A DNA stretch of 64,000 bases, taken from Cycas panzhihuaensis. Lineage: Eukaryota; Plantae; Cycadophyta. The DNA is taken from positions 96,107,741-96,171,740 of the forward strand of contig CM041465.1 of the NCBI GenBank assembly GCA_023213395.1, given 5' to 3'. The notes beneath the pieces are model-generated. The model was not told the DNA's origin. It saw only the letters and a list, made by a program, of their open reading frames with translations, and ran no database searches. This document shows positions 3,214 to 44,800 of this stretch, piece by piece; within the stretch, counting starts at the first letter, position 1, and the number at the start of each line of letters is the position of its first letter. Made by a program: the position numbers and the translations under genes.

Positions 3214-3650
3214 TGTTAGGATTATTAATGTTACTTTATGTTATTTCTAATGTCTTATTTAGTCACATATGTAATTTATTATTTAAGTGATTCTAATGTT
3301 TGATGTTTAGAAGTTAATTCAATATTATGTGAAAGGTCATTGAAATGCATAACCTTCAATGAACCTCTCTTGTTATTTATATCTTCTCCTAGATTCAAGA
3401 AGATGGTTCCGAGAATCTATGAGGTTGTCCAAAAGCCAGTTTCAAGATTGGTTTCATGTATGTAGAGGGTATCTTTAAGGTCCATTGTATAAGTCATTTT
3501 TTATTAATAATATTTAGATTTAGGAGGTGGTTTTTCTTCCCCGGAAGGGGTTTTCCACCTATCAATCCATGTGTACTTATGCAATGTCTTTCTCTTGTAT
3601 TTTTATTATTCCTGTGATCCAATGACATTGTACATGTGCCTATTCTCACA
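3214..3650 (+). mobile_element. Solo LTR (437 bp), same family as the LTR at 63398-63847
   Basis: TGTTAGG...CACA termini; perfect TSD CAAAG at 3209-3213 and 3651-3655; colinear with 63398-63847. Confidence 0.92.
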
Positions 3651-3676
3651 CAAAGAATGTCTCCTTATAGAAATAT

Positions 3677-5433: not shown

Positions 5434-6409
5434 TCGACCCCTTCTCCCTTGTTAGGAAAAAGGGGCAACTCCCCTCCACTTTGAAATAAGCCTAAACTAT
5501 CCTTTGTTTATGATACCAAATACCCTCACAAGGGACAGGGCATGTATTCAATCTTTGTCTCATTTCTACTTATTGCAAGGGATGGCAAGGCTTTCCCATG
5601 AGGATGCCAGAAGCCCCTCTAACAAGTCAAACCTTCTTTTAGTCCATCGGTAGTGGATGTTCTCCCATAAGAAATATTTCTCTACATCCACATCTGATGC
5701 CTGTACCAATCCATATCCATAGGTTGGATCAAGCCCCATGGGGGAAGATTTATTCAACCATAAATATAAGTTATCCCCTAAAAGAGCAAATAATAATAAA
5801 ACTCAACACTCTTTAAGAACCCTTGGGCTATCCATATCTATTGGGTCCTTTCCTTTTTATCACCCATGTTAGCATCTTAAGCTCCAAGAGAGCCTATTCT
5901 ATCTTCTACCTTGGGTATGAGTACCTCTATGTGAGGGCCTCCTTTCATTCCCAAGCTCTTTCCCTTATGCAGAGATAGTAACTAGGATTGCTACCCTCAC
6001 CTTGGGTGGTATGTGATCCCTTTACTTGAATGCTATATGAGATGCCTAACCATACCATGGTGATCATGTGTGTACCTAATGTGTGAGCTCCAAGCCATGG
6101 ATAAGGTAAAACAATACACCAAACATGATCTAAAGATCTCGCATACATGGATGTCCATTAGCAAGAACTAAAACTCATAACAAAAAAGGCACCAATCTGG
6201 TCCTCATCTCTATATATATAAGTATAGAATAGTGATATAATAGTATATTAGCATAATGTGCTAAAGGAAACCAAAATCCTTGTAGGGGGTGTACAACTAT
6301 CCTCTCAAATTAGGTGCATACATAGTACGGGTACCTCTTGGAGGCCTAATCTTTCCTATAACTAAAATAAATCATCATACAAAAAATCCCTAGAGCTACC
6401 TAGAGATAG

Positions 6410-8678
6410 TCATGGAGTGTCACCCTCAGGTTATCTTGTCCTCCATTCTGGGGTCCAGGTCCTCCCCAAGACTCCTCTTGGGTCACTATGAGGTCTAGGC
6501 CTTACTCTCCTCATCTCACATGTAGCTCTCATCCCTTGATCACTTGTGGGAAGGAGTCATCATATGTGTCCATGATGACTTGGCTACCATCTAGTCTACT
6601 AGCCTGTCATAGCATGTCTAGAGTTGATCTTGCTCCCTTCACACCTCAGCCAGTCAACTCTACATTACTTAGAGCTAATCATTCTCCCCTTGGACCTCAG
6701 ATAGTCATCTCTAGGCATCTTGGAGATGTGACTATAAGATTGCAATCCTTATATTGGCCCTTGTAGCCACCTATAGAGGCATTGCTACCACTAGAAATGC
6801 TCTCTCTCTTCTATGGGCCTCTAGCTCCCTCACCTAGACATACAATTAGTCCCTCTTTATCTAAAGACAAGCCCACTCCATCTACCTCTCATGGGCTTTT
6901 ACAACCTATATATCCCTAACCTTGAGTAGGGGAGCAAATATGGTAGTCTATAGGTACATTGACTCTAGCTCTCTAGTATCCACTATCAGAGGCTATCCCT
7001 TTGCATATACCTAAGGAAATAACTTAACCGCCACTTTATGGAGAAACTCTATTGTAATATGCTCTCCTACCAACCAAGCAATTATGTGTGTCAATAAGGA
7101 TACTAGCATGGAAATAATATTAAAAAACCCATTCAAGTAAATAATCATAAGTGAAGACTATAACTAAACGAGGAGGGGGAATACCTCTTAGAGTAGTCAA
7201 TGCCCTTGGTACCACCTCCTCTCTAATCCCTAGGACCTCCTCTCCCTTAGTGGCCATGGCTTCCTCACTAAAAGTAGCCATAGACTCATCCTCCTTAGGT
7301 TGGGTAGTTATATCTCCTCATTGGCATCATCCTCTAGCTCCATTGCTAGCTTTGTTGTAGCTTCTTCTCCCTCCTAGTCACTATCCCAATAAATAGAATA
7401 TATGGCTAGTGCATATAATCATTTAAGATTAGCAAATCTAAAGATGTGGTAGCCATCGACATACTAAACTGCTTTGGCTCTATGATACTCTTGAAATGGG
7501 AAGGCCATCAAGGGATAAGGGCATTGGCTAATATTGATTAAGGGCCTATCACTGGTCCTATTCCCCTAAAGTGATCAAAGAACTAGCACTGAAGTAGGGA
7601 GTAATAAGAGAAGTTGTTGTGTCCTACCACCTGAATATGGTCCAACTAGGCTATGATATTAGCCACTATTAGAGTGGCCTAGTCCAGCCTCTATCCCTTC
7701 TCACACCAACAGATGATCTCTATCCATCCTCTTAGAACATCTCTATAATTCTATTTCTAGGAAATCTTGAATAGAATGGTAAAAATAATGAGTTTCCTTG
7801 GTCAAGGAATATGTGCTACCATGATGGTTTGGATCACTACCCCACCGATCCTAATAGCCCCTACTATAGAAAAACCTATCTACCTCCTAATGTATTACAT
7901 CCATGTTAGATAAGACTCCCAAAATAGCTAGTGCTCCACTTGTTAAGATCCCTAAGATCCTTTGTACATCCAATGGGGTGATTATTAGGTCCCCAACTCT
8001 AGGTAGGTGGAACACGTGCCCCTGTGATCCTATAGTGGGATATGATATTAATTAGAAGTGCCTAATTGGAGCTGTACTATTATGATGCAATAACTTTGAG
8101 TAACCCACATTGCCTTAAGATGCCATAGTCCTAGTTGGTCATTAGCTCTACTAAAGCCAACATCGGTGCCTTAATGTTTTTATAGTTATCCACTACCATA
8201 ACTACCTATAATCTAACCAAGATACCATTGATTAGTTACCTACTAGTTAATAGGAGAAACCCCTCACTCAGATGAGTAAAAATAGATAATTTTTTAGTAA
8301 ATTTTTTTTTTTAAATATTAATCTAGCTGTGTACCACATAAAAGTTTATAGTACTACAAATAAATAGGCAGTCTTCAGTCTCCATCCCGTAGTTTTTCCT
8401 ATGGTATCATAGAAAACTCTGTGGTACCAAACATCTCTACCCTAAAAACAAAATGTTAACTCTAAACTACCTATGTTTGGACCTAAAGTAGGTCCATTAG
8501 GATTAGGGCACCCAAACACCCCAGTCCAACCTCTTAAAGGACCACAAATGGGTCATATTAAGCCCTAATATCCTAAAATAGGAACTACTTATCTACCAAA
8601 AAATATAAAGACAAAAACAAGAAAAAAATAATCTCAAAGTTAGGTTCCACTTATTGAGTCCACCTTTTCTATTGCCAT
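6410..8678 (-). pseudogene. Element A antisense PMD/coiled-coil gene (decayed, spliced)
   Basis: Exon 1 MAIEKVDS (8678-8655), acceptor at 8206-8207, then VVMVVDNYKN and VFHLPRVGDL; homologous to C 18143-20542. Confidence 0.8.
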
Positions 8679-9434
8679 GACATCTTCCAGATCTTGAAGA
8701 CTCCTCCCATATGATTATCTAGTAACTAGATCTCTCTTAGTAAGCATGTAAAGGCAAGGGAAATTGAGGGTGGCAGAGGGATTCTCTAACAAAATCAAAT
8801 GAGTAATGATGAAAATGAATTCTAGATTCTCCACCAACCTATTTTTATTCAACCTCCTTTGGTAGGCTCCCCAAAGATCTTTGCTCATTTTCCACTTTGA
8901 TGGAGCCATTAAGTCATTATTTTTGGGACCATTCCTATGTGCTTAAGGACCCAAGTCCTTTTTGACTCCTCGACATTATTTTTCTCACCATTTTATATGT
9001 AATATTGATGGTTTCTACCTTTCTCTAAGGTGGCCTTTACCCCTAAACACACTTGTTTAAAACCTTGTTAGTGCTTATACTCCTTACGTCTATATCAATG
9101 CATTGATCTCTCATTTTATGATTATATTAGCCCTTTTACATTGCCTAGCAAAATCTCACTTTCTTTTCCAAGATTTCTATTAGGTTTTCAATAAACCTTG
9201 AGCTTGATCGATAATTTCTTTGTACCATAATCTCTCCCTCCCATAGAGAAAATCCTTCGTGAGCCTCATTGCCTAGCTATAGGTCTCTCATGTCTTGTTG
9301 TTGAGTGGTTTTTGTGCTATTTTGACCTTTAGGACTCATCTCTCTTCACTCGAGTTTCTTTTCTCTTTGCATTTTCCCCCTATCAAGGGGCAATATTTAT
9401 TTATCTTTTGAAGTCACAGCCATTTTTCTTCTCT

Positions 9435-9845
9435 ATGGCCTTACTCATCTACACTAATGGAGGCAACCATAACAACCCAGGGCCCTCTACTATAGCCTAT
9501 ATCATCCATGATCCTTCTAGGCACACCCTTATACATTCTAGGATGTATTTACCTAAATCCATAAATAATAAAGTAGAGTATATGACCATCATTCAAGACT
9601 TTAACTAATGTGATTTATCTCCATGGTGGCCCCATTATCTTGCATTATAACTTCTAGATCATAGTATCTCAGTTGACCCAGGTCTATCAAGTGCTTTACC
9701 ATAGGTTGAGGTCTTTAGCTATGATAGCTAGATCCTTATTAGCTCATTCTCCTCAATTAACATCTAATATATCCCTCATGACCAAAATGTTGAAGTTGAT
9801 AGCCTAGTTAATCTCATCCTTGAGCATTACCTTTAGCTCATAGAT
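9435..9845 (+). pseudogene. Element A stand-alone archaeal-type RNase HI
   Basis: MALLIYTNGGNHNNPGPS...INNKVEY...YIPHDQNVEVDSLV. Confidence 0.85.
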
Positions 9846-10336
9846 GACTCCCTTTCGACCCAACAGGTTACCCATTAAAAAGGACCTTATGGATACTCCC
9901 CCTTTCTTCCTTCACCTCTAAAAGAAACTACTAACAAGGTAAAACTAGGGTGACTAAGACCTCCATCCACCTAGCTCTTGCCTTTTATAAGTATAACGAG
10001 GCATCCCCCCATCTCCCTAAAGGTTTACTTAGGTTTTAAAACCCTATTTTAGGGTCATGCCACTGACTTGGTATATTACTAGGACATCCCCCTTGGTTGA
10101 TACCTTTCCTTTTCACCTGCACATGCTTAGGATTCACTACCATACACCTTGGGATTAATTTGGTTATGCATATGTCTCCCTCCTTAGCTTGTACCTCTTG
10201 ATCATACACCTGTTGCAACACTCATTGCCTCTTTATGACCCACACATATTTGACTCCTAATTATTATTCATATTAATAGCATTTATATTGGTAGCATTCA
10301 CCATCAGTATAGCTTTAGAGTGATGAGGTTTTGTTG

Positions 10337-10348
10337 CCAAGGGGGTAG
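10337..10348 (+). promoter_or_regulatory. Polypurine tract of element A
   Basis: CCAAGGGGGTAG abutting the LTR start TATTTCCC; matches the PPT of C. Confidence 0.8.
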
Positions 10349-12424
10349 TATTTCCCAAATATTGAGAGTGGATCAGGAGATGATGATACACAGGTAAGTG
10401 AAGGTATGTATCTCTTCCTCCACTTTCAATTTTAGAGTTATATTATTGAGTTTAGGATGATGATTTGATGCATGTTTAAGGCTTTCTTGGTTTGCTTATC
10501 TCCTCTTTTACTAGTGATGATCAGGACTCTAATCTAATGGCCTCTAGAGCCTTCTATCGTGGCTTAACAATTGGTGAGGTGACCCTTATGCTATCCCTAT
10601 AACTCTATTTTTGCCAGTTTTTCAATCCATGGCTACTTATTTCATTTAATTTTCCACTTTGGATATATGTGGCATGTTGTTTAGTGACCATAGGATTAGT
10701 CTATAGGAGCTAAAAGTGATGAAATAAAGCATTGAGATTAGTTTTTGATAAGATGTTACAATACCATGTTGATTTTTGTTGGCAATAGTGGTATAACAAA
10801 GTGTTTATAGTATCACAAATAAGTTCATGGTATAGCAAAGCACTTCACAATATGACTATTACAATAGTCAGTCATAGCTAACAACATTCAAATTACATAA
10901 TTAATATCTCCCTACCAGGCCTAGCAGTTCATGGTAGGCCCAAGTCAATACACAATGGTCTAAGGAGGCCTCTTAATTCACCAAACTACTATTTTTTTAA
11001 TTTATTTAGAGTGGATTCATTTGAATGAAAACATAGTAGTCCATGGTTTTCTGGTGATGGTTTCTCACATAAAATTATCATCCAAACACCTTCAATTCTC
11101 TTATAAAACCCTTCATTTTTTATAGGGGATGGTTCTATGAGTTGTATTCCTTCATGAACTAAGATCACTTTCCATTTTTTAGGTTCAAATTTCATATATT
11201 CACATGCTTAGTTAGGCTTGGTTCACATGCCCATTCTTGGTTGAACTTGGTAGAGATCCTCATTCTTAATTTAGATTCACACTATCTTGGCTTTATTTTC
11301 TTATTCTTGAGACTCAACACCTTGGATTACTATCATCCTTGGCATAATTTTCTCAAGGATTGATGAGATTTGCTTTATTTAACTTTGAGCACTAAGCAAT
11401 TTCCATTATTTCATTGGAGGAGGACTTGGAAGGAGGCATTAGCAATCTCAGAGAGGATTGATGAGGTTCATTTGTATAACTATCAACTTCAACTCACTCC
11501 ACACACTTGGGTAATCCCCCTCCTTGATGCATGGTGTTAGATCTTCCTTATACAGACTCTTTATACTCCATTTTGGGCCATGTTACCATATGTTATAATG
11601 ATTTTACTCTAATAATTACTTAGATGTTCCTTGTTGCTATATTTCTATCTTTTCTTCATTGATTGTTTGTCAAGTTACATTGATTTTGGAAGGTTTCCCT
11701 TGGCTTAACTAAAGAAACCACCTATAATGAGGAGGCTAATAGCATCTTGAGGCACTCGTCACCCCTATTTCCTATATTTCACACTTTATTTCACTTTATC
11801 TCTTTATGATGAATGTACATAGTTATATATAGTGCATGCATTCCCTTAGTAGTGTATAGAAAGTAGTGTTATAAACTATATTATAACTATTATTAGTTTG
11901 GGTGACTTCCTAACTTATATACAAGGTAGAGACCAAAGCTTTCCAAGGAGTTAAAAAAAACCTAATAGAGGATCACATCTTCTAAGGTGAGCTCTCCCTT
12001 CTCATTTCATTTACTTCTTAGCATTGTTAATTTCTACTATTTGTATTATATTGCTAGTTTGATTTGGGGCAGGTAAGTGGAACCTCTTACCTTATAATAT
12101 CATAGCATAAGAGAGGCTACAAGGCGATGTTAAGGAAAGATATTCTTACTGATTACTTCTATTGTAGTTATTCCCTCCATCGTTTTCCTTATTTGCCTTC
12201 TTGCATTACGTTGGTTTCATCTCTTTTGTTATATATATTCACTACCCCCCTTATTTCCTTTTTTTTAAGGAAAGTGAAGAAAAGAGGGAAAAGAGAGAGT
12301 AAAGAAAGAAGGAGAGAGAGGGTTGTATAATTCTATTATTCTTTAAATCCCCCCTTTTTCCTCCATTCCTCCTTATTTTGATTTGAAACGATTACAAAAG
12401 GAAAAGAAAAAGGATAAAAGAGAG

Positions 12425-12479
<55 letters not shown>

Positions 12480-12978
12480 TTGATATTTCTTGTATATCAC
12501 TTTCTTTTGCACTACTTGGTTGTTGTTTTTTTTTTGTAATAGGTATATGAACAACCTATATTAAGAAAGAACCTTAAGTAGAATATTTAACTACCTCCTA
12601 GCTCAACATAAAGTAAAAGAATAATCCAAACCCTATAACCTTCTTCATCTATCCTCTCTACCATACCCCCTACCTATAAGGAGATCTTCCAAACCACCTT
12701 CCATAAGAGGATAGGAGAAGCCTTGCTGAGGCAACCTGATAACCTAAGGAAGCCAAGCCACCCATATCTCAAAGACTTATCACCCAAAAAACTTAAGACC
12801 TTACATGTGAAAAGGGGAACACACATCATGCAAGTCCCAAAGTTAAGCCCAAGTGGTGCACAGACACCCTTCTTAGGTAAATGAGAGCTTCGTTGTGCTT
12901 CTTTAGGTCCTTACACCCTAGGCCTATCACTCATAGGTGCATGGTTGACTCTTGTTACCCCTAGTAGGTACACTTCTA
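10349..12978 (+). repeat. 3' LTR of element A (~2.6 kb; termini decayed TG>TA and CA>TA)
   Basis: Starts after the PPT; the 3' ~1 kb is homologous to 46745-47727, which ends at a PBS. Confidence 0.8.
12427..12477. repeat. (GA)n microsatellite in the LTR of A
   Basis: About 25 GA units; homologous tract in the D LTR at ~47047-47079. Confidence 0.95.
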
Positions 12979-13290
12979 GAGCCTAATAAGCCTAAAGAGA
13001 ATCACCCACCTATAATAGGTAACACTCGAGAATAAAAGTAACCAATTAATTAGTCTTATTGTTATGTCCCTATGGGACATGGCAGATATCACTATAGAGA
13101 ATTATGCTAAAAGTGACCTAGCTTGGTTAGCAAGGGTATGGAGTTAGGGGTAGCAAGCCTAGTAAACTTGGGTAAGCTGACAAATAATAAGTTGTGAGTT
13201 ATTCAACAACATGATAGGGTTGTGCTTAACTTGTCATGCATTAATCAAGGCACTAATAATAATAATACACTTAATTTTATTATTAGATTC

Positions 13291-14050
13291 TAGAATTACG
13301 TCTATGGGATAGTAACTACACCTGGTTAAGATTGGGTTGGTCAACAGAAAGCTCTAGAATAAAGAGTCAATCTAAAAAGTGAAGGGAATCACCCACACAG
13401 GGCATCCTTGCATCAAAACATAGGTTCGGGACTCACGAATGGTGCACAACTTCCCTCTAAGTAACTTAGTTTTGGTTTTGGGGGTAGCACAAGTGAGGGA
13501 TATCCTTGGTTTCCTGAGTAACCTTAAAATGTAGGTCTTCCCACCCTTGAATGGTCGAAAGGGAAGGGCAAAACCCAATGAGGGGATGGATAGAGTGTAT
13601 GTAGGCAAGTGACATAGGAGGTATACTCCCATGAGGGTGGTGTCAAATAACCACCTCATGCACGGGACCAACCCAAAACAAAAGGTGTCAAGATTATTAA
13701 GTTGGTACGAATGTGATTGGGTTAGAGGAGGATGTACTAGAGGATAAATCCTCCTTGAACTAATCAACCTAAAGTGAGTTCAAGGGAGCTAAGGATGATG
13801 GTAAAATGAGCTCTCGTCATCCTACAGGCGAAGGAGTCTACCTTCGATGTGTAATAGTAAAATAGTGTTTAATTAACTATATGTGTAAACAAGAGATAAA
13901 AGAAACAACAAATATACTCTTTCTCATTCTTCTTTTAAATGTGAACCCTCACTCTCCTTTTACTTTAAATAAGAAAAAAAGGGGAATGATGAAGGCAATC
14001 TAATCTAGCACAAAACATACATGCTAAAGATGCAAAACCTAAGAGGTTGT
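13291..14050 (-). repeat. Element B 3' LTR, part 1 (U5 end)
   Basis: Aligns to 41749-42505. Confidence 0.92.
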
Positions 14051-16627
14051 TGGACGTGCGTCTATGGGATAGCTACCTAACTAATAGGTGTGGTGAGAGT
14101 GGGTGATGATATGATCGAAGGAGAGACCTATGAGGAAAGTAATTACCACACAGAGTGCCACGTACGCCAGAGCGCGAGTTCGGGACCTGCAATGGAATAT
14201 GGCTACTAAAAAGTGATCCTCCACCACTTCAAACAAAGGGTGAAGAGGCGTAGGGTTAGCCTGGGTTGACCTAGGGACAGGATTCTCCCACCCTTGGATG
14301 GCCAGAAGGGGAAGGAGAAGATCCAAGAAAATAGGTCAAGGGTGTGCCTAAACAAGCTAACTGGGTACACAAGCAACACAGGAGGCAAGAAACTTATGCA
14401 GCTAAGGAGAGGAGGAAAGGTGAAAAGGGTGGTTCCTATAGCCTTTCCTATGGGTAACAAAGATGCAAGTAATAAAACAAATAAAGCATAACCAAAAACA
14501 AAGTCAAATTTCCCTTTTGTTTTCCAATGTGTTAATTACTAAGAAAAAGTTCAAAAGGAAAAAGTCAGGTGGAGTAAGGCGTGCACCTGGACCAAGGGCG
14601 CACGTGACGAGGGCCTTCTCGAGGGGCACCAAACTACTCCACATGGTGCGTTGGATGCGAAGCATCGCGGCGGATTTGGAAGAGGGGCTCCCTTACCTTC
14701 CCCGGAAAAATACCAAATACGATGCCAAGGAAAGAAAGCAAGTAAATGCTAATAACTAAAGAAGTACGAAAGTATGATGTACATGAGAGCACTCACCAGC
14801 AACGGAGCTAACGGATAATATCCTTCGCGCTCTCCAAGCACCTGCAGACAACGGCAACCTCCCCCTTTCTGGGGAAAAGGTACTAACATGCAATAGCGAG
14901 ATTCTAACAATATATGTCTATATAATACAAATATAAGTCTAAACACATATATGTTAGTATCAACCCAACGATGATAGTATATAAAAGAGGGTAACCAAAG
15001 CGAAGGTAAATGACCGGTAAGCCTCAGAGTGGCCCACCTCTTGCAAAGAACACCCTAACCCCCCCCCCCCCCCCCCCAAAAGCCACAGGGCAGTGAGGGC
15101 AAGGCCAAGAGAGATGGCTAGAAATGGCAACAAGGAGGTGAAGAGGAGCCAAAGAACACCTACGGCGAACCGGGATGCTATGAAGAGAAAATCGGGCAGC
15201 CAGGAAGAGAGTTGGACAAGGACTAGCAGACTGACGCAAGTTGCCCAAACCTGAACCTAAGCCCTCAAACTAGCGCTGCAACGTGTGACAGTGCTAATTT
15301 CAGTGGCTAAGAGAGGGCCAACAAACCCTTGTTTAAGTGCCAAGGACAGCACAAGGCGAGAGGGAGGATTTGGGGGGCTTTAAGCCGCTTGAGGAGCATG
15401 GAAGGTGGTACGGAATCCACCCAGCTCCTTCCCAAAGTCTATGCCAACCCTCAACGCCATTGCCTTGAGCAACAAACGTAGGTAAGAGGCGTTATGATAG
15501 AGGTAAAACAACCCACTAAAAAGAAGAAAACCAAACTCACAAGGACAAGCAGGGAGCAAGCAAGATGGAGCATCAATATCATAAGAAAAGCAATTCAACT
15601 CAAGAAATACCTGAGCGGGAGAGGCAAGGGGCTTGCCTTAGCCAAGATCTGGTGAGGAGGGGCTAAGAAATCAGCCCAGATCTATGGTGTAGTAGGTTTG
15701 GGATCCTGCTAAGGGAGTTGGAAGGAGAACACCTGCACTTGGAACGCTTGAAGACTGCCCGGGGCAAGAATCTACTGAAATCTCTCCAAGGGGCCCTCTC
15801 CAAGGTGTGTGAGGGGCTGGGAAGATGTCCTAGCCACACTGAAGGAGAGTTGGGCATTGTAGGAGAGATGGAGGTCCTGTGGTAGCAGCAGGGCAGCAGA
15901 GAAGAGCAGAGCACAGCGTTGTTTCCTTGAGGAGCAATCCAAAAGTGAGCGAAAAAGTTCTTAAAAATGAGTCAAAAATGACTTAAGTACTCAACCCAAA
16001 TCCTAAAGCGAGTGATTAGGGTGCGGCTGGAAGAGAGTTAAGTCACGAGCCATATGGCAGTTTCGCAATAAATGCGAAATTACCACGGTGGATTTTAAAA
16101 AATAAATTAGAACAGTTGTACCACCGCAAACTCCACGGTACCGCGAATATTTCGTGATCTGGCAAAATTCTGCCATGCAGACCCATAGGCAAAATAGGCT
16201 GACCCGGTAGCTTAAATTTGAGGCGGGGCGATAAAAGGGCCAATAGGGGCTAAGACACCTACCAGGGGTAAACAAGCCAACAAAGCAGTCCAATAGAGCA
16301 AAAATAGGGCTCAAACAAAGGTGGCAAGTCAACCAAACAATGACGGGTCATCACTGCAGGCGGAGGTGGCGAGTGGATCCTGGAGGGAGGAGGACAGATG
16401 CGGGAAGTGAAGTGGCCACCAGGGTGCCACACTCGCTGGGAGTGTGCCCCTGCTATAGTCGTCATAGGCTAAGATAAGTGTAGACGAGGACAAAGTCGCC
16501 TACAATGCCACACACATGCAGACATGCAAGCAAACACTCATCAAATGAAAGTGATGATAAGGCGAGAAACATACCTATACTTACCTAAGTCGGTGATTCC
16601 GTATCCATTCCTGGAAGCTGGGAAACA
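14051..16627 (-). repeat. Element C 3' LTR (2577 bp)
   Basis: Direct repeat of 28084-30645; preceded by the PPT on the minus strand. Confidence 0.95.
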
Positions 16628-16639
16628 CTGCCCCCTTGG
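16628..16639 (-). promoter_or_regulatory. Polypurine tract of element C
   Basis: Minus strand CCAAGGGGGCAG followed by TGTTTCC. Confidence 0.88.
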
Positions 16640-17040
16640 CAGCAGAGCCTCACCGCTCGGAAGCCTGGTGCGATGGCGAATGCTGGCAACACAACTATCA
16701 GTAGTAGATGTGTATATAGATATATCAATCAAGATCATAATAGTAGGTAAGGGTGCCAGCGAGTGTCGTGGCAGAACACGTGGATACGAAAGCGGTGATG
16801 GAGATAACATAGGGGCTGCCTATGAGCCACCTAGGAACCGACTAGAAAACTAAGAAAGGTGAGGGGGCTGCCTCCACCACAAAAGATGCGGAAGAGCATG
16901 CATAATCAAGTGAAAGAGAAAGCAAAGGGTAGGTACTATAGTTTTACCTCATTAGTAACCAGGTTTCGGAGGTGCGAATGGATCGCGAAGCAAAGTGTGA
17001 GATGGCCTAGGGCTTGAGCGACAGGAGGGCGAGACAAGCC

Positions 17041-17460
17041 TCAGGGACGGTCAGCAAGGAGAGGAAGGCGGTGCTTAAGGATGAGGCGAACGAGACTATC
17101 TGCCTTAGCGTTGAGGGCGCGAGGGATATGCTGGATATCGACAGAAGAAAAGTAGGCCAGGAGAGATCCGGCGTGAGCAAGAGTCCTCAAGTGAGGGCAT
17201 CGCACCTAGTAAACCTGGGTGAGATGAGACACCATAACTTGAAAGTCGCAAAGCAGAACGATGGATCCGTGATGGAAACAGAGGGCATCAGTAAGGGCTT
17301 CAATAACAGCTATATATTCAGCTTCATTGTTAGTAGCCTCTGGGAGGAAGATCCTAGAGCGGAGGAGATCGTGTCTAAAAGGGCTACGGAGAATCCATGC
17401 AGTGGCAGAAGGTCCAGGATTACCGTGGCTTTCACCGTCGGTGAAGATGTAGATGGACAT
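17041..17460 (-). pseudogene. Element C stand-alone archaeal-type RNase HI (139 aa, one internal TAG)
   Basis: MSIYIFTDGESHGNPGPSA...TNNEAEYIAVIEAL...LCDFQVMV...QHIPRALNAKADSLV; all four D-E-D-D carboxylates present; single internal stop at 17206-17208. Confidence 0.93.
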
Positions 17461-17977
17461 AGGTGACACAAAATCGAGGCAATCAATGGGCAATGAAAGC
17501 AACACTCGAAAGGCAAGTAGAAAGTGGTTGTGAAGGGTAGGAGGACCTAGCAAAGAGGTTACCCAGGGTGAGAGCAAGCAATCTGATCACCAGTGGAGAG
17601 TGGTCGGAAGAAAAAGCCTCATGAGGCACCAAAAGGTCGCTTTAGAAAGCAAGACATGCCCCCAAGCAGGGGAGCATTCCCTTTGGGGGCCACAAGAGCA
17701 AGAAAGGGCTGCAGAAACGAGTCCAGGGCGACGAAATGAGCCAAACAAGTATAAACTCAGGCACGCATGGGAGTTGTGCGTAAAACGATGCAGAAGGGCC
17801 CTAGCAAAAGCGTGGTAATGAGGCACCATAAATGCCCTTGCAAGGGAGGGCAAAAAGGGCCTCAATAGAGCACAATGGGCGACAGGGCCAGAAGGCAAAG
17901 GTGACTAGGGCAACGAGACAGTCCCAATGGCTGTCGTGGGGCCAAAAACGGAGGGAGTGCCCGTTGGGGGCCCCGCC

Positions 17978-17984
17978 TATATAA
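17978..17984 (+). promoter_or_regulatory. Candidate TATA box of the antisense PMD gene
   Basis: GCCTATATAAGGAAA ~160 nt upstream of the exon-1 ATG; identical in B at 34373-34379; not conserved in A or D. Confidence 0.65.
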
Positions 17985-18142
17985 GGAAATTAACGGGAAA
18001 ATGGATTCATATTCACCGGCTGTCATACGAAACCAGAGCCATTTCCCTACATAGCAAAGCGCCACCCAACTTTGGAGGCACGCAGAGAGAGATCGGACAG
18101 TCAGATCGAGGCGGAGAGCCAACACCGGCCAAGCAGGACGAC

Positions 18143-20542
18143 ATGGCGATAGCGAGACCGGATCCAGTGAGTGGATATCACTAAACCCAGCCCATTTCAA
18201 AGTTCAAAGTTCATTGGTTTTTTTTACAGTTTTTGCATGGTTTTAGTGCCCCTTATGGGTAACCGGAGGCCTCTCAGAGTCTGAATCGGACCCAGAAAGA
18301 GGTAGGGACCTGGGCATTAGGGAGCCACAGTCTGGTCCCGTGGGTACCAGGGTCCACCGGAAGAATTTTTATTTTTAGGCGTAAATCCCTCTTTGGGGGG
18401 TCGCCATTCGTACCGCGGTAATGATCGCGATGCCGTGATCATTACCGTGGGACCCGATCACTGCGGGACCCGTGCCAAACTTAGTGGTACCACTAAGTTT
18501 GGCACTGACGGGCGTAAAAATAGGTACGAGGGCCAAAAGAGCCCCAAATCTCAAGCAGAGAGAGATTTGAGAGAGTGAGGGATGACAGTGACTGACGTGA
18601 AGCTAACTTTGATTATTTTTGGTGTGAACAGGCTGTCATCGCGGTAGATAACAGCGAGAACATGGGTATGGCCATGTTGAGCTACATGGAGATGGCGACA
18701 CAGGAGGATAGGGAGATCCTACAGAGGTGTAGCCTATACAAGGCCCTCAAGACACCTCAATATGCATCAGATCAGAGATTGTTGGTTGACATAGTGTCTG
18801 ATTGGGACAGGAGGAGACATGTGTTCCACCTACCACAGGTAGGTGATGTGACGTTCACGCCGAGAGATATCCGGCGGATACTAGGAGTTCCGGCGACAGG
18901 GAGGCTAGTGAGACTAGGGACGCTGCTTGCATCGAGGCGGCGCAGTGCAACCCTGTTCTTCATAGGAGCTGACAGATAGGAGGCGGAGGAGCCCCTCCGC
19001 ATCTTGATGTCAGGGATTCCTCGAGTGAGGAAAATGGTTATAATGTGCGTTCTGTTCTGGATTTCCTGGAAACATAACTATAGGGAGGTACCAAGTGGGT
19101 GGTTAGATGCAGTTCGCCACTGTGAAGCCGACGAGAGGATGGACTGGGCGACCCTGATAGTAGTGAACCTTGTCGCCCAGCTAGATACTATCAGGATATC
19201 CGGCAGAGGTGGGTTGTCATATAGCACACTGTTGCAGTGTTGGTTCTTCGATCACTTCGCGACAGTGGCACCAGTGGGGGGACCACAGCCCATCACAGAG
19301 TAGGCCCTGATGGTCCACAGGTGGCAAACTCAACTAAGAGCGATAGAGGATAAGGCCCATGTCTGATGATCAGTGGAGGCTACATCACTAGACCTCCTCA
19401 CCCTACCAGACTACATAGCAAAGCCCTATAGGATAGTGAGGTGGGATAGTGACGACGAGGTGGGCAGAGCAGGAGTGCCTACAGGCGATGACAGTGGGGA
19501 TGACGGAGATGATGGAGATTATGGCGATGACAGGGCCAGCTCGTCATGACCTGCAGGGGAGGCAGGTCCCTCAGGGACAGCAGGAGGCGCAGAGGGTCCA
19601 TTCGGGGCTGCCAAAGGAGAGGCAGGACCGTCAGGAGCGCAGGGCGAGAGCAAGGGACCCGTGACCAGGGCCCACAGGCTGCAGATCGTGATGGGATCCA
19701 GAGGGACGAGAGCTGGGCACACCCTTGCGAGGAGGGAGGCCCAAGCAGAGGAGGTGCCAGAGGACGAGGTACCCATGGCTGGCGGAGAGCCAGGAGGGGA
19801 GGATGCCGCACGACCAAAGGAGCTGGCGGCCACAGCAGGTGAGACCTAACCCTTTCTAGAGTCATTTAGTATCCAGATAGATGTTTAGTTTGGTTTGATC
19901 ATGGTATATGGTGAGATATAAACTGACACATGGCATGTTGTATTGGCAGGTGCAGCGGAGATCCGGAGATTGATAGAGGCTGTGGCAAGGGAGATATTCC
20001 CTCAGGTATACGCAAAGGGGCAACCACCCATCCAGGCAGGAGATGAGCCTAGAGTGGCAGGTGCCCACACAGAGGCATTCGCCCCATTGGTGAGGGCAAG
20101 AGACACATGGTCTGTAGAGTCCCAAGAGCACGTGACATCCCAGGGACGACTGCAGTAGGAGAGGGATGATGCGAGATGCGAGAGGGATGAGCTACACGGA
20201 CGGGTATAGGCTCTAGAGGCACAGAGCGGAGCAGGCGGAGATGTCGAGAGCATGACACAGCTAGCAGTGCTCACAGAGTGTCTCAGGGGAATAGAGGAAG
20301 CACTCCAGGGAGAGAGGGATCGTATCCAGGCCCGATATGATCAACTGGTAGCACAGATGGTATCGAGGTCAAGCCGGAGTAGGACACATACCCTCACGGT
20401 GGCGATGACCCCGAGACAGTCGAGAGATAAGGAGAGCGAGGCGGGCAGCTCGCGGAGGCCCAGGAGGAGCCTTGGAGGCATGTGGTCCCCAGGAGAGGGA
20501 TCACAGAGACCAGGAGATGGTACCCTAGGAGCGGGGCAATAG
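18143..20542 (+). pseudogene. Element C antisense 3-exon gene (18143-18166, 18632-19838, 19950-20542), ~607 aa: Plant Mobile Domain, acidic/Gly-rich linker, coiled coil
   Basis: LLVDIVSDWDRRRHVFHLPQVGDVTFTPRDIRRILGVPATG and DWATLIVVNL...LLQCWFFDHF match PMD (PF10536) motifs; GT-AG introns with CTAAC/CTGAC branch points keep the frame; 7 in-frame stops, no frameshift. Confidence 0.9.
18472..18505. repeat. Perfect 34-bp palindrome in PMD intron 1
   Basis: GTGCCAAACTTAGTGGT|ACCACTAAGTTTGGCAC. Confidence 0.95.
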
Positions 20543-20675
20543 TAGAGTAGGATATGTATATATGGTTTTGACAGGGGAAAGCACGGCCTCTAGGGGGTCA
20601 TATATAGGATCATATGATTGTACCCCCCCTACAAGGACACCAGCTTCCTAGATGTATGATGTGACATGATTTTTG

Positions 20676-20680
<5 letters not shown>

Positions 20681-20731
<51 letters not shown>
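20681..20731. repeat. (TA)25 microsatellite in the PMD gene 3' UTR
   Basis: Read directly. Confidence 0.97.
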
Positions 20732-20733
<2 letters not shown>

Positions 20734-21245
20734 GGTAATTGGAACCCCATTTGGATATGAGATGCTGTGTATAGGTCATGTGTGGTAGACATGTATGTTT
20801 ATTTTGTGCATTATAAATGTTATGCTATGGATATTTTATGTTGTGAATATTTTATTGTATGATGCACATGTTTCCTTCCATGTATGGCTATATGTCTAAC
20901 AGGAGCACACACACACGTCGTGAGCAGAACAACAGAGAGGTGTAAGGTTAGAGGATAGAGCGGCATACACGTCTACGGAAGAGCATAGCGAAATATGCGA
21001 AGGAAACGACAGGTAGGAAAGAGAAGCGACCATGCTCCCAAGCATCTTCCTGATTAGGGAATGCCCAAGCAGGATGACAAAAGTTCCCGAGAGGGTACGG
21101 GAACACAGGTTCCATGGAAGGAACCGGAAAGAGGAAGAAGGATCCATCTTAAATTGCCATTCTACCCGTGGTTGGGAAGAATGGGGACAACCTAAGATGG
21201 TAGTTTAGGCTCATTTCATAGCAGGGCGAAGGGATCATTGAAAGA

Positions 21246-24200
21246 TCACGCATAAAACTTCTTAAGGAATTTCCCATTAACAGCTTTCTCAAATTCAAGC
21301 CCTTCTAGGGTGGCTATCCTGTAGGTACCATTATCAAGGGATTCGATAATGATGAAAGGACCAACCCATCGGGGTTTGAACTTGGTCAAATGGTCATGGA
21401 GATATTCGAGCTTGAGGACGTGGTCCCCAGGAAACAAAGGGCGGGAACGAAGATGTTTATCGTAGGCCCTCTATGAGTGGGCTTTAGATGCCAGGTTAGC
21501 CTGATAGGTGGCTAAGCGTCTCTCATCCAAAGCTTCAAGGTCAAGCAAGCGAGCCTGACGGATCGATTCTTCGTCGATGAAACCTCGAAGGGAGACTCGC
21601 AAGGAAGGAATCTCCACCTCCAGCAGGAGTACCGCCTAATCTTCAGACCCGGGGAGGCAGGGTCATTCCCGTGGCGGAACGGATAGAGGTGTGGTAAGCC
21701 CACAAGGAGGAGGGCAACTGAAGGTGCCAATCCTTTTGGGATTGAGCAACGATTTTCTTGAGAATGTTGACAAGAGTCTTCTTAAAAGACTCCACTTGGC
21801 CATTTGCTTGAGGGTAGTAAGGGGAGGAAGTCTTATGAGAAATTTCAAACTTCTCACAAAGCTCATCCATCTCCTTATTACAGAAAAGAGTTCTATTATT
21901 AGTGATTAAGACGTCCAGAATTCTAAAACGGCAAATGATATGCTGCTAAATGAATGTGGCAATTATTTTGCCAGGAGTAGTGATCAAGGGAATGGCCTCC
22001 GACCATTTGGTAAAATACTCCGTGGCAGTCAAGATAAACTTGTGCTGCGACGAAGAAGGTGGGGAGATAGCCCCAATGAGGTCTAGTCCCCACTGAGTGA
22101 GAGGCCATGGCGAAACAATGGGATGCAGGGCCTCGGAAGGCACATGGGAAATGTTGGCGTGTTCCTGACATTGCTGACATTTCAAAGTAAAGGCGTGAGC
22201 ATCCTTAAAGAGGGACGGCCAAAAATAACCCATGTAGAGGATCCTCTGAGCCATAGACTGGCCCCCAAAGTGACCTCCACAAATGCCGTGGTGGCATTCG
22301 CGAAGCACCTGGTCGCCTTCATGCAAGAGTGAGGAGGATCCCATCGAAGGACCTCTTGTATAATACCTCATCCACGAGGAGGTATTACCTGGCAGAAGTC
22401 TGGATATGAGATCTAACTTTACTACTAGCGTCGGGGCGGTATTGCTGCTGTGTAAGATACCACACTATGTCACCATACCATTCATCGTCAATGAGTGGAT
22501 GGGGAGAAGCTCCCTAAATCGTCAAGATAGACTCATCTGGGAGAGAATCGTCAACGAGAGTACCAAAGAAGTTAGGGATAGGGGCATCCGCGAGTTGCTC
22601 GGCTACTATCATTCCCTTCTTTGATTTCTAGTTAACGATATGGAGGTCAAATTCTTGGAGTAGGACGGCCCAACGACCAGCCCTACCCATCAAATCTGAA
22701 CGAATTAGCAAGTATTGCAAAGGATCGGATTGAACGATCACCTTGGTGGTGTTGCCAAGCAAGTAGTGCCTGAACTTCTTAGTCGCATGGTCCAAGGAGA
22801 GGCATTCCTTCTCGGCGAGAGAATAGTTAATCTCAACAGCCACAAGAGTGCGACTGATGAAATATATAGCTCTCTCGGTTCCTGAGTCATCCTCCTGAGC
22901 TAGCATGGCGCCCAAGGATTCGTCAGTCGCCGAGGTGTATAGGACGAAGGGCCTATCGAATCGAGGAGGTGCCAACGTAGGAGCGGAAGCTAGGGCTTCC
23001 TTAAGTCCTTCGAAGGCCTTTTGGGTCTTGTCAAACCAGGCAAAATGAGCTCCCTTCTTCAATAGGTTCATGAGGGGTTTAGCGCTTACAGTGAAATCGG
23101 CTAAGAAGCGCCTAAGAAAACCAAGCCTCCCTAGAAACGACTTAATCTGTCGTTGAGTTCTAGGTGGCGGCATGTCAAGGATTGCCCTGACCTTATCAGG
23201 GTCAATCTGAATTCCTTGTTTGGGTACAAGGAAACCAAGGAGTTTACCCGAGGTAACGGCAAATACACACTTGAGCGGATTTAGACTGACGTGATACTTG
23301 CGGTATCGTGAAAAGATGGCGCGCAAGTCGGAAGGGTGATGGGCCCTAATGCGGGAGAGACCCATCATATCGTCCATGAAGACCTCCAATGTGTTATCAA
23401 TGAGGTCATGGAAAATGAAATGCATGGCTCTTTGGTAAGTAGCACCTGCATTCTTAAGGCCAAAGGGCATCGCCTTGTAGGCGAAGGTACCCCAAGGAGT
23501 AGTGAAGGCCGTCTTATGGCGGTCTTCGGGAGAAATTTAAATTTGGTTAGAGCTGAAGAAGCCATCCATTAAGGACATCACTTCAAATCTGGTGGTGTGA
23601 TCAATGATTTGATCAAGGAAGGGTAACAGGAAATTGTCCTTGGGACAAGCATTATTGATGTCATGAAAATTGACACATATACAGATTACCCCGTTCTTTT
23701 TAGCAATGGGGACGATGTTGGAGACCCACTTAGGGTAGTTAATGGAAGTGATAAGCCCAGCGTCTAGAAGCTTCTCAACCTCCATTTTGACGGCGGTAGA
23801 GAGCTTTAGGTGAAGGGGACGCTGCTTCTGGCACACAGGGTGGGCGCCAGGAATGGTGGTGAGGTTATGAGTGACAATGGAGGGGTCAATTCCCTTCATG
23901 TCAGCATAATCCCATGTGAACACGTCTCGGAACTCCTGGAATAGAAAGGAGTACTCCCTTATCTCATCAAGGGAACATTCCAACCTAACCTTAATGACCT
24001 TGCCCGGGGCCAAGACTATGTCTTGGGTTGCCCCCATGCACATGGCATTGCCCTCCTTGAAGTGGAGAGGGGCAAGATCAATGGGAGGAGGAGGAATAAG
24101 AGACGAGATCAGATCGGGAAGCGTGGATCCGATCGTGAGGATCTTCTGGTGACCAAGCATGTGGTGACTAGAAGGCAAGTTGGGCGTAAAACCTGCCAGA

Positions 24201-27200
24201 TGCTCAAGGAGGACTTCGTCATCCTCGAAGTAATCCACCCCATGGATGACCTTACTTCGAGTAGAGGAAGCACTGGAGGTAGTAAGAGCAACGGTACCGT
24301 GATGGTCGTCGGGTTGCTCAACTTCCTCGCGGGAATCTGAAGGAAAGCCAAGAAGATGCTCCTTGGAAGGAGCGAAAGGCAATTCTTCAAAGTCATTACC
24401 TATGGGGGGTAATGAAGAAGAATAACTGACGACGGGCGAGTCAACATGAGCGATGACGTGGGATATGTATGAATAGTTAGCCTTACCAATGAGAGAGATC
24501 CTAGACGGGGATCTAGAATGAGATGGGTGCGGCCTACTGGCACAGAGGAAAGAAACGGGGTGAAGACAATCCTCGTCTTCGTCGAGTGACTCGTCGTCAC
24601 TAAACGAAGCAAGGTACCTGTAACTCCCAATGCCAATAAGAGCAAATCGCATGAGACTAGGGGAAGAAGATGCGGGATCTTCTTCGGATGGGTTAGGTAT
24701 ACCAATAGAGCAAGCTGAGGCATGCGTGGAAGGACCTTGGTTTGTCAAACTGGCGGAACGAGTTTGTTTGGTGAATGGGCGTTCGCGGGAAATCACTCTC
24801 ATCCATCTGTCATGGACGAATTTAAGTTGTCCCCAAAGAGTCGAGCACACAACTCCCATTTGGTCGAGCCATGGACGACCTAGAAGGAGGTTGTAATCCA
24901 CGTCAACGTTGAGGACTACAACGTCAGCAAGAACGGTCTTACCCTCAAGGGTGAGCGGAATCACGACAGATCCCAAAGGGGTCTTCTCGCTACCATCATA
25001 ACCTTGGCATCGCTAGGGAACAGGTTCCAAGGCAAAGATACCAAGCTCTTGCATGACACACAAGGGCATGGCATTGACAGAAGAACCATTATCGACAATA
25101 GTCCTCCAAAGGGTACAATTGGGTGTATCGATAGTGATAGTGAATGGGAAGTTCCACTGACGTTACCTTTCACCGGCGGGAGGAAGATCCTTAGGGTCAA
25201 ATGAGATAATGGGTCCACAACCTTAGGTGACACCCAAAGCATAGATAGGCGCATCACTCGATGCTAAAGCTTCCAGGAGGAGGGCCCGCTGCTCGGGACA
25301 ACTCCTCAAAACGTCCATCAAGGACATTCCTACAGCGACAGTATGAAGCTCGTCCACGATGGAGAAGGGCTTACCCTTCGCGGTAGGTTGGGTAAGTGCC
25401 CTTCAGAAATCGTAACGACCTGGGCGTACAGGAATAGCCTTGGAAAAGAGAGGTATTTCCAGAGGAAGGTTCTCTGGAAGAGGGTAGGAAGGAGCGGAAG
25501 AACAAGACGCTCCTGTTGCTTCCTTAGCGGCTTGAGATCACGTAAGGGCGTAAGTAGGAGTTGCTTCAAGCAACTGGATCACCTTCTTCCCCTTGTTCCG
25601 GGGTCACGAAGGTGACGGGCTGCGACGGCTAGGAGAACGAGAGGAGGAAGACGAGTTCCGGGCACCCTTCCCTTTGTCGTGGGAAGGACAGGGATCAGGT
25701 GATCTTCCTCTGTTTCGGTTACTCTTGGTTTGGGTGTTGCAATCATGTTCCCCATGTTTAGGGAACAGATCCTTGTGAACTGGTTGGTCCAAATTAGGCC
25801 TTGAGGCCCGTTTGGGGGAAGAATCACGTCAAGGGGCATCCTTGGGATGCTGGGCCCTACAACGCGAATCGTCGTGGAAGCACTCCCCATGAATGGAGCA
25901 CCACTTCTTCTCAAGCGGAGGGTCTGACCTTCTCCCTTGAGAGGACTGGGCGTTTCCATTCCTGGGGAGAGGAGCTTGGGTTGTTTGTTGGACTTGTTTA
26001 TTGGATGTAAGGGATGAAGGAGCCTGAAGCTTGAGTTCCTTCATCGTACACTCGAATGAGCGTATGGCCGATGTGAGAGGGTTTAAAGTCCTCTTAGTCG
26101 GGTGAGAGGAAGATCGGGTAGGTTGTGAAAGTTTGGTATCCTTGGTTGGGGGTGGTGCCTCACGGCGCTGTGAGGGCTTAAGAGGTTTCTTGAGACTGGC
26201 TTAGATCTCAATAGCCTCCAACGCCAAACACTTTGCGATCGCAGAGTCACATGTGGTTGCTCCCATCTTGAGGACTTCCACATGAACTTCGGGACGAAGT
26301 GCATTGACGAAAAGGTCTCGCTTCAGCTCCTCGGGCAATGTTGCCTTAGTGGAGTGAAGCAAGTCGTGAAATCGCCACACAAAGTCACGATTCATTTCAT
26401 CGTGACCTTGTTTGAGTGAAAGAAGTGACTTCATTCCACTCTCGAATGGACGGGCTACATCAAAATAGTTGATGAACTCATCCACCAATTACTGGAATGA
26501 ATGGATAGAATGGGCAAGGAGATGGTAGAACCACTTGAGGGCATCACCCTGCAAGGATCGCGGAAATAATTTCATTAAAATGTGGTCGTAAGCCTAGTAA
26601 TCGATGTATGCCATAGAAAAACTATGCACATGCTCCGCCGGGTCTTGCGACGAAGTTCCATCGAATCTAGGAACTTTAGGGGGATGAGGCGGCAGATTGG
26701 TTCTTAACGCCTCAATGGAAAGAGGTGTTGACCTAAAGTCCATGAAGGGGCGTGCCCTTGCCTAGACCGTAGGGTCAACGAATGTCATAGTAGGTAATGA
26801 ACAAGAAGCGGATGGGGGTGGAACACCCATCCCTCCTTGAGGAAACGCCCCTTGCTGAAAAGAGGCGTGGGGGTAGGTGACTTGGAAGGGAGTCAGGTTC
26901 CCTTGCGAAGGCACAATGAATGAGATTACATTGGATGATGGGCAAGACGGATATGGAACTAGGTTCTGCCCATATGGGCCACCCGTAGGTGGAGCGACCC
27001 CATATGGGTGTAGCAGATCCACCCCATAAACCGGGAGATGGCTTCCTCTACCCTACCCCCAAGGCTGAGAAGTATACCCTGGGGGGATGTAGAAGGAATC
27101 ACCAACGTGTTGGTTTTGAGGATGTGTGGGAGCGGATCCCACATGACTAGTGGTCGGAAGGCTAGTAGGACCGACAGGCCTACTAGGAATGGTATGCACT

Positions 27201-27910
27201 ACATTAGGGGATGGCACATTAGTTTGGTTAGGGATGGGTATGCTAACCTTCAATTGAGGGAAAGACACACCAAGGGGAGATCCTGAAACACTAGGACCTC
27301 GATGAGAAATGGAAGGCACGACACGTGCCCCCACTACGAGAATAGGAAAGGAGTGGGACACATGCGCAGGCACAAAGGGATTCGTTCTCAAAGGAAGAGT
27401 AGATGAGGATGAGGCATGCGGGGGAGGAGCGGAAGAGGAAGAGGCTCCTCCACGGAGGGCACCCTCAAGCCATCTAAGACGCGGTTGCAAGCGTTCCGTG
27501 CGGTGACACTCGTTGAGAGCTTCAACTACGTCAACGGGAGGGGTTCCTACATACTCGTAAGAGGTAACTGGGACCTCGAACAAAGTAGTTTCCTTGTAAT
27601 GCTCCTCATAAGAGTCACTGACTACATGGCAAGTCTCAAGAGGAGTGGATCCTTCTACGGCATGGGTAGAGGGATGGACATCGAGCGAGAGATGTTGGTC
27701 ATTTGGGTAATAAAGGGGTTCATCACCCTCTTGGGTGGACCTGGGAATAGAGGAAGGAAAAGCATGAGTTTCTAAGGTTGAAGTGTGGTAGGCCCAATAG
27801 GAAGAGTATCCCTCCATAGTCAGATCAGAATCTGACAAAGGAAGAGGGTAATACTCAGGGTCTTCTAACAATGGAGGTAGACCGCGCAAGCGACGAGAAA
27901 AGCATCGCAT
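21246..27910 (-). pseudogene. gag-pol: Element C gag-pol polyprotein (GAG-PR-spacer-RT-RH-INT, no chromodomain, no in-pol aRNH)
   Basis: Single frame from ATG 27910 through gag (KLFPRSLQGDALKWF, CSIHGECFHDDSRC), protease (IVDNGSS, LLLGRPWL), RT (MPFGLKNAGATYQR, EVFMDD) and RH (EKECL); integrase (HHGICGGH..CQQC, WGLDLIG, YYPQANGQ, WVGPF); many nonsense stops, frameshifts near 22330 and 21650. Confidence 0.96.
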
Positions 27911-28064
27911 GCAAGATCAACCAACAACATTAGGGAAAGAGAGAGAGCTGTAAAGCACACGCGTTAGGGGTTGCCCAATGTAGAGATCGAAATAGGTATA
28001 AAAGGATTACAAGAAGGTAGCGAAACCAACGGAAGAGAGCGGAAACTAGCTCCCTTACTGGCAG

Positions 28065-28082
28065 TCCCCAGTATGGTCACCA
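28065..28082 (-). promoter_or_regulatory. Primer-binding site of C, tRNA-Arg-like
   Basis: TGGTGACCATACTGGGGA, 1 nt after the LTR; resembles the Tat/Ogre Arg PBS TGGCGACTCCACTGGGGA as I recall it. Confidence 0.85.
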
Positions 28083-28083
28083 G

Positions 28084-30645: not shown

Positions 30646-30650
30646 GTTGT

Positions 30651-41587: not shown

Positions 41588-41729
41588 GCAAGTTTTGCCT
41601 ATGTGATAAAAGAAAAGAGAAATAAGGTAGTGCACACATTGGGGGCTGCCCAACAAGAACAAAAGGGAAAGCTACTAAGAGGAAGTAGCACTAATAGGAA
41701 GGGAGAAAGACTAATTCCCTTATGGCAGG

Positions 41730-41747
41730 TCCCCAGTATGGTCTCAA
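41730..41747 (-). promoter_or_regulatory. PBS of element B
   Basis: TTGAGACCATACTGGGGA next to the LTR end. Confidence 0.8.
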
Positions 41748-44700: not shown

Positions 44701-44800
44701 GTTTACCTCTCTAGAGAAGTAGTAAAGGTAAAGGATAGAAGCATACATGTACTTACCTAAGTCTACTTACCAAGAACCCATTCCTAGTAGCTAGGAAATA
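41749..44800 (-). repeat. Element B 5' LTR (3052 bp)
   Basis: Matches the joined 13291-14050 plus 30651-32909. Confidence 0.93.

Follow-up and report, generated by a model that had tools for sequence, protein, structure and literature searches.

Does the pair of genes that lies between pol and the 3' long terminal repeat (LTR) of a Cycas panzhihuaensis retrotransposon form a regulatory system of its own, or does it belong to a type of element that has already been described? The question arises at positions 16585-20880 of a 64-kb stretch of contig CM041465.1 (hereafter the window, to which all coordinates refer), where a first-pass annotation had proposed a two-gene regulatory module of undescribed architecture, with an antisense gene for a PMD/coiled-coil protein head-to-head with a sense gene for a stand-alone RNase HI. 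These positions correspond to the 3' internal region of a Ty3/gypsy element, named here element N, from the pol end to the 3' LTR. We conclude that they very probably represent the usual accessory region at the 3' end of a Ty3/gypsy element of the post-integrase Tat lineage and that both genes are already catalogued. A solo archaeal-type RNase H (aRH) outside pol (PMC10508981 and PMC13468544) and an antisense PMD extra open reading frame (eORF; PMC4408406) have been published, so the claim of novelty fails for the two components, whereas the head-to-head order and the motif shared with the LTR do not appear in the portions of those texts available to us. The new details are modest, namely, the gene order, the introns of the PMD gene, the boundaries of selection, and the shared motif.

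Self-comparison and self-blastn of the window resolved four related Ty3/gypsy elements, N, O, P, and Q. The first, of the Tat type, is a 16,595-bp element on the minus strand (N, 14051-30645) that is flanked by the target-site duplication (TSD) GTTGT at 14046-14050 and 30646-30650. Its LTRs are approximately 90% identical (90.4% by self-blastn between 14051-16627 and 28096-30645); the ends of the 3' LTR (14051-16627, minus strand) and the target duplication were read directly, and the true LTR ends lie 14 nt outside the first blast boundary. N is inserted within the 3' LTR of the outer element O (13291-44800, minus strand; TSD GATTC at 13286-13290 and 44801-44805), and both insertions have clean 5-bp target duplications. 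O measures ~14.9 kb after subtraction of the nested N, and its LTRs are 86-89% identical. Elements P on the left (about 3200-13290, with the 5' end missing) and Q on the right (about 44800-58700, as delimited by self-comparison) lie on the plus strand. The internal regions of N and O are 65-70% identical and those of P and Q 72-77%, both of the latter being farther from N, and the two subfamilies (N/O and P/Q) share only 45-60% protein identity. All four copies are old and inactivated, and every one of them is broken.

Element N displays the features of one particular Tat lineage. On its minus strand, Pfam detected RVT_1 and RT_RNaseH_2 at 22631-23470, Integrase_H2C2 at 21949-22371, and an SH3-like integrase C-terminal piece at 21246-21437 that forms the end of pol (stop 21246-21248). 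Reverse transcriptase (RT), native RNase H (RH), and the integrase (INT) thus stand in that order, with aRH beyond INT in an open reading frame (ORF) of its own and with an antisense 3' PMD ORF; no second RNase_H was found by Pfam in the ~260-nt gap (22371-22631) between native RH and INT of N. In gymnosperm Tat lineage III, as presented by Ustyantsev 2015 (PMC4408406), the archaeal RNase H (aRNH) lies beyond the integrase, at the Pol C terminus as drawn, and is accompanied by an antisense 3' PMD eORF. The corresponding structure #3 of Biryukov & Ustyantsev 2023 (PMC10508981), given there for conifers, Cycas, and Ginkgo, has aRH in a separate ORF; the wording of the text is upstream of pol, yet structure #3 is drawn, and later named, as post-integrase. 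The term solo aRH is that of Prokopeva 2026 (PMC13468544), which describes the reports on its pol membership as controversial. We take TatIII of REXdb, structure #3 with clusters Tat H and I, and lineage III of Ustyantsev 2015 as names of one type. For TatIII, the REXdb survey (Neumann 2019, PMC6317226) gives aRH after INT, a TSD of 5 bp, lengths that average 14.7 kb within a range of about 12.7-17.3 kb, and reverse 3' extra ORFs (eORF-3'R) in 18% of elements, and the 5-bp TSD and the lengths of N (16,595 bp) and O (~14.9 kb) fall within these values. The same survey lists tRNA-Arg (64%) and tRNA-His (15%) for the TatIII primer-binding site (PBS). In N, a PBS-like sequence of the TGG type, TGGTGACCATACTGGGG, is located 1 nt past the 5' LTR (28062-28081, minus strand), and O has a decayed PBS-like counterpart at 41723-41742 (minus strand). 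The polypurine tract of N, AAGGGGGCAG on the element strand (16628-16637, minus strand), abuts the 3' LTR. The fourth catalytic position of the native RH is Glu instead of Asp in N and Q and Lys in P, which fits the degradation of native RH that has been published for Tat elements. Among named sequences, the nearest relatives of the protease (PR)-RT ORF share just 45-48% identity with it.

Elements N, O, and P share one gene order (pol, antisense PMD gene, sense RNase H gene), and the distance from the PMD start to the RNase H start is 683 bp in N, 705 bp in O, and 757 bp in P. The cassette of O (33416-36979) consists of a minus-strand RNase H gene (33835-33416) and a plus-strand PMD gene starting at 34540, and it is riddled with stops. 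In P (6465-9850), the PMD gene runs on the minus strand from 8678 and the RNase H gene on the plus strand from an ATG at 9435. Element Q has the PMD gene (55908-58319, minus strand) and lacks the RNase H gene because its similarity to P ends at ~58.7 kb (near 58723), ~400 bp past the PMD start. Just past this end, an integrase C-terminal fragment of another related element is found at 59567-59737 (minus strand); its probable source is the insertion or rearrangement by which Q lost its RNase H gene. The earlier observation of a head-to-head pair in three copies and of its PMD half in the fourth is thus confirmed, as is the retention of the cassette in a copy that has lost RT, RH, and INT: element O retains the gag and protease region, and RT/RH/INT are absent from it. 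Retention in one dead copy, however, says little about whether the cassette is needed.

The RNase HI ORF of N (17041-17460, minus strand, sense to the element) starts with an ATG at 17460, stops at 17041-17043, and comprises 140 codons. Pfam RNase_H matched it with 34.9 bits (cut-off 25.8), and it is interrupted by a single in-frame stop (17206-17208) and by no frameshift. The catalytic residues D, E, D, and D and an Arg-containing C-terminal motif (IPR..N..AD) are present, with TDG, NNEAEY, LCDF, and IPRALNAKAD legible in the translation. In a PDB search, the best solved relatives were 4e19, an archaeal RNase HI from Halobacterium, and 140-aa stand-alone enzymes of the 3u3g type; residue 3 of the N protein aligned to residue 4 of the solved stand-alone enzymes, and the length and N terminus were the same. 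Profile, residues, and PDB relatives all point to a type 1 RNase H of archaeal-like kind. The likeness to 4e19 and 3u3g thus covers the fold family, the 140-residue length (3u3g), the N terminus, the DEDD residues, and the Arg motif, whereas the N protein differs in being encoded by a plant retrotransposon rather than being cellular, and it is known here from sequence.

The start of this ORF was compared with its relatives. A protein search against 1.8 billion representatives yielded 1069 RNase H matches, of which the three closest (P0002-P0004) are short ORFs with 55-58% identity. Each of them has a Met at the site of the N ATG or no more than two residues away from it (aligned to query positions 40, 42, and about 40), and because this Met is internal in P0002, it is not an artefact of ORF calling. 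The members of the closest RNase H clusters come only from short Logan and ENA contigs, and the only match to the RNase H piece in a word-indexed protein search was bacterial. Within the window, the start Met is kept in N and P and has decayed to ATA in O. At the catalytic Asp codon (17437-17439 in N, 33812-33814 in O, and 9456-9458 in P), the RNase H motif TDG has become TNG or ING in O and P, at a CpG site.

Selection on both ORFs was assessed by pairwise Nei-Gojobori comparison of the natural copies, without a consensus, and by a global nucleotide alignment that was independent of the protein searches. The comparison of N with O gave a dN/dS of 0.09 for RNase H and, for the PMD gene, of 0.17 in the PMD part and 0.25 in the tail, against about 0.8-1.7 when the same alignments were read out of phase; beyond the coding frames, only the antisense frame with common third positions gave a low value, as expected. 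In the comparisons with P and Q, synonymous sites were saturated (proportion of synonymous differences, pS, 0.7-0.84), and the nonsynonymous proportion (pN) was 0.27-0.34. Over the RNase H ORF, N and O differ at codon positions 1, 2, and 3 with frequencies of 0.26/0.21/0.49 and with 0 gaps in 420 nt, whereas the flanks are flat, at 0.49/0.41/0.44 in the 117 nt upstream and 0.36/0.38/0.37 in the 3' flank. The PMD exons show the same third-position asymmetry, which was absent between N and O from intron 2, from the region upstream of the acceptor, and from the region past the PMD stop. Since the asymmetry is confined to the ORFs, both were protein-coding and constrained while the subfamilies diverged, and the constraint on RNase H starts at its ATG and ends at its stop. 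With dN/dS values of 0.09-0.25, not near 1, the first-pass observation survives this comparison.

These data bear on the view that the pair is a functionless passenger, either a fragment of a nested transposon or host genes captured by chance. PMD does occur in MULE DNA transposons too, and gene capture by LTR elements is known (PMC7264820). However, the position and order of the pair are unchanged in four copies from two subfamilies with only 45-60% protein identity between them, both ORFs show purifying selection, and no long inverted repeats were found at the edges of the N cassette among arms up to 60 bp apart. A passenger origin is therefore extremely unlikely.

The boundary of constraint bears equally on whether RNase H might be the C terminus of Pol, joined to it by the Ogre-like removal of a sense intron that spans the antisense PMD gene. 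Gag-Pol is produced by splicing of an intron in relatives of Ogre (cited in PMC4408406), aRNH was placed by Ustyantsev 2015 at the very C terminus of the putative Pol, and PMC13468544 calls the published reports controversial. In N, the distance from the pol stop to the RNase H ATG is 3.8 kb. Constraint stops at this ATG, with differences of 0.49/0.41/0.44 over the 39 codons and 0.55/0.44/0.41 over the 80 codons upstream, and the conserved Met stands at an N terminus typical of stand-alone enzymes. No AG lies within ~47 nt 5' of the N ATG, and no splice acceptor before the RNase H gene is conserved across N, O, and P. A Pol fusion is accordingly unlikely, and the description of the pair as an antisense spliced PMD/coiled-coil gene and a sense stand-alone RNase HI gene stands: the two are separate genes, whose starts in N are 683 bp apart.

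The PMD gene of N (18143-20542, plus strand, antisense to the element) is modelled with three exons and two introns. Exon 1 (18143-18166) comprises eight codons, and its ATG is kept in 4/4 copies. Intron 1 (18167-18631) is 465 nt long, with a YAG acceptor kept in three of the four copies. Exon 2 (18632-19838), with five premature stops, contains the PMD domain at ~18740-19300 followed by an acidic and Gly-rich linker. Intron 2 (19839-19949; 111 nt, GT...AG) has in-frame stops and no codon periodicity, and exon 3 (19950-20542) encodes the coiled-coil tail, with two premature stops and a terminal double stop. Read as one plus-strand frame, 18632-20542 therefore holds seven premature stops and a stop-rich insert of 111 nt. 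The PMD model was searched exon by exon or piece by piece, without reading through stops, and gave two colinear matches to Pfam PMD (PF10536), at profile positions 4-63 and 124-192, with 21.9 and 16.7 bits against a cut-off of 34.9; the domain is split by a stop, which keeps both pieces under the gathering score. For the second piece, 30/30 ESM-Atlas feature matches were PMD clusters, the best of them scoring 0.94 with 193 features in common.

Support for the two introns differs in strength. The intron 2 donor GGT is invariant in 4/4 copies, the AG is present in N and P, and the frame is preserved on removal, so this intron is well supported, whereas intron 1 is supported more weakly. The island containing exon 1 and its ATG at 18143 is the most conserved stretch of the whole spacer. 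An ATG at 18662 was considered as the PMD start and was rejected, as it is replaced by ATA, ATT, and ATC in the other copies and is preceded by 10 conserved codons that reach the YAG acceptor at 18631. Another possible donor for intron 1, located 4 nt farther downstream, has its GT in 4/4 copies, yet with it the reading frame of N is lost. Independent copies here have often decayed in parallel through transitions at CpG and CHG sites, and mutations shared among copies are for this reason poor evidence of ancestry.

The PMD tail was predicted to form a single 47-residue helix (residues 8-54, ~20231-20371) with pLDDT of 95-98, and hydrophobic residues with 3-4 spacing make a heptad pattern legible in the sequence. 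The predicted helix supports a coiled coil. In the linker (19420-19700), an acidic run is followed by a Gly-X-Y-like, collagen-style stretch with a 9-bp repeat detected by TRF at 19495-19530. Its codon-position differences between N and O are 0.39/0.47/0.50, and this weak periodicity indicates that the linker evolves almost freely. A (TA)25 microsatellite (20681-20731) lies ~140 bp past the PMD stop, between the PMD gene and the pol end.

The divergent spacer of N between the two start codons (17461-18142; 682 bp) contains conserved islands in an alignment of N, O, and P, one of which is AGTATAAAC at 17748-17756. The sequence TATATAAGG at 17978-17986, oriented towards the PMD gene on the plus strand, is identical in N and O and lies ~160 bp 5' of the PMD ATG. 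It matches a canonical TATA box and is a candidate PMD promoter. Two more TATA-like boxes in the spacer are also directed to the PMD gene, and the three-copy alignment of N, O, and P revealed no promoter box directed to the RNase H gene.

The motif AAACTNNNNGGTACC occurs 10 times in the window, where 1.1 occurrences are expected, and none of 100 shuffles contained as many. Its sites are in PMD intron 1 of N, O, P, and Q and in the LTRs of N and O. The LTR copies are at 16128-16142 (3' LTR of N), 30147-30161 (5' LTR of N, with one mismatch), and 44239-44253 (5' LTR of O), ~500-550 nt into U3, in a block of ~70 bp that can be aligned between the otherwise diverged LTRs of N and O. Beyond the 15-nt motif, no common block was found between LTR and intron 1, which excludes that the intron motif is a duplicated LTR fragment. 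In intron 1 of N, GGTACC forms the centre of a perfect 34-bp palindrome (18472-18505), and another inverted repeat lies at 18410-18453; the RNA fold of these repeats gave twin hairpins with z = -6.5, whereas the corresponding stretch of O does not fold (z = -0.3). In LTRs of the P/Q type, a decayed GGTACC is the centre of a 22-bp palindrome with arms GGTAAG/CTTACC, at homologous positions (12071-12092 and 46824-46845). As aligned here, this palindrome is a second, differently armed version of the N/O LTR motif. The AAACTNNNNGGTACC motif itself is real and probably functional. Of the shared palindromic motif proposed earlier, the core common to LTR and intron 1 is thus retained, but the extended palindrome is perfect only in N.

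Such a motif bears on the regulatory interpretation, in which the PMD/coiled-coil protein would bind GGTACC palindromes and RNase HI would clear RNA:DNA hybrids, tuning or countering silencing. The first-pass interpretation is supported in part, for the two separate genes, their constraint, their conserved head-to-head order, and the motif shared with the LTR. The motif is far above chance in LTR and intron 1, the LTRs of the second subfamily have GGTACC palindromes as well, with other arms, and a dimer formed through the coiled-coil tail could sit on a palindrome. A role in silencing is cited in PMC9289625 for the host PMD proteins MAIN and MAIL1, with which the element protein has only the domain family in common. 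The motif could equally serve a host transcription factor, as a site used again in two promoters or enhancers, conservation does not extend to the longer palindrome, and aRH is treated as the successor of a degraded native RH (PMC10508981), which makes reverse transcription a simpler role for the enzyme. We therefore consider this interpretation coherent but quite unlikely. The fuller version, in which PMD would be a dimeric regulator of the LTR U3 and intron palindromes and would form a circuit with the solo RNase HI expressed from the same spacer, controlling element transcription or chromatin, appears similarly improbable.

Under the preferred reading, that of a Tat accessory region, the element encodes gag and pol (PR-RT-native RH-INT) and, past the pol stop, two further genes. 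The PMD mRNA would be made only from the integrated DNA copy, through its own TATA promoter in the spacer. Antisense ORFs (aORFs) can carry their own promoter (PMC7264820), and because the PMD gene is antisense to the genomic RNA, its introns would survive retrotransposition. The PMD protein may be a nuclear accessory factor, by analogy with the products of other Tat antisense extra ORFs such as Grande gene23. The solo RNase H, encoded just upstream of the polypurine tract, would have as its mRNA a subgenomic sense transcript that arises by splicing or by internal initiation, and would supply RNase H for reverse transcription in trans; its simplest role would be to replace the weakened native RH.

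Several points weigh against this reading. The best copy, N, carries seven premature stops in the PMD gene and one in the RNase H gene. The element was assigned to its lineage by its architecture, and we infer promoters, splice sites, and expression from sequence. The intron 1 donor is GT (GTGAGT) in N only and AT in O, P, and Q; this AT reflects a G-to-A change at what is a CHG site on the opposite strand. How an RNase H outside pol reaches the reverse-transcription complex is a question that the literature asks too.

Comparison with known systems places N closest to Tat structure #3, with which it shares aRH past INT and outside pol, the antisense 3' PMD gene, the 5-bp TSD, a length of about 13-17 kb, and an altered native RH core. 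The available portions of the texts on structure #3 make no mention of a PMD gene between pol and solo aRH, of PMD introns, of a coiled coil, or of the GGTACC motif. Grande of maize (gene23), RIRE2 of rice, and Retand of Silene have an antisense gene between pol and the 3' LTR, as here, and in Grande this gene is driven by an internal promoter of its own and its product is nuclear (PMC7264820). They differ in that aRH is in pol between RH and INT, several of them encode Transposase_28 and not PMD, and none has a solo RNase H beside the antisense gene. Ogre (Tat lineage IV) resembles N in its PMD/coiled-coil extra ORF and in its introns, but the ORF is in the sense orientation at the 5' end, the intron is in the sense transcript between gag-PR and pol, and aRH is within pol. 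Tat structure #4 (pre-capsid; mosses and a clubmoss) likewise has aRH as an independent ORF outside pol; this solo ORF, however, is upstream of gag, and a PMD gene is not reported.

At a larger scale, the plus strand is purine-rich across N and O (14000-46000), with a GC skew of +0.1 to +0.27 and an AT skew of up to +0.30, so that the sense strand of these elements is pyrimidine-rich.

The Tat literature asks how an RNase H outside pol serves reverse transcription, and the reports on its position have been called controversial. To this question, the Cycas copies add a solo ORF that is bounded by its own ATG and stop, was under strong purifying selection, and stands head-to-head with an intron-bearing antisense PMD gene. 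They also add a palindromic motif common to LTR and intron, which is a candidate for protein binding.

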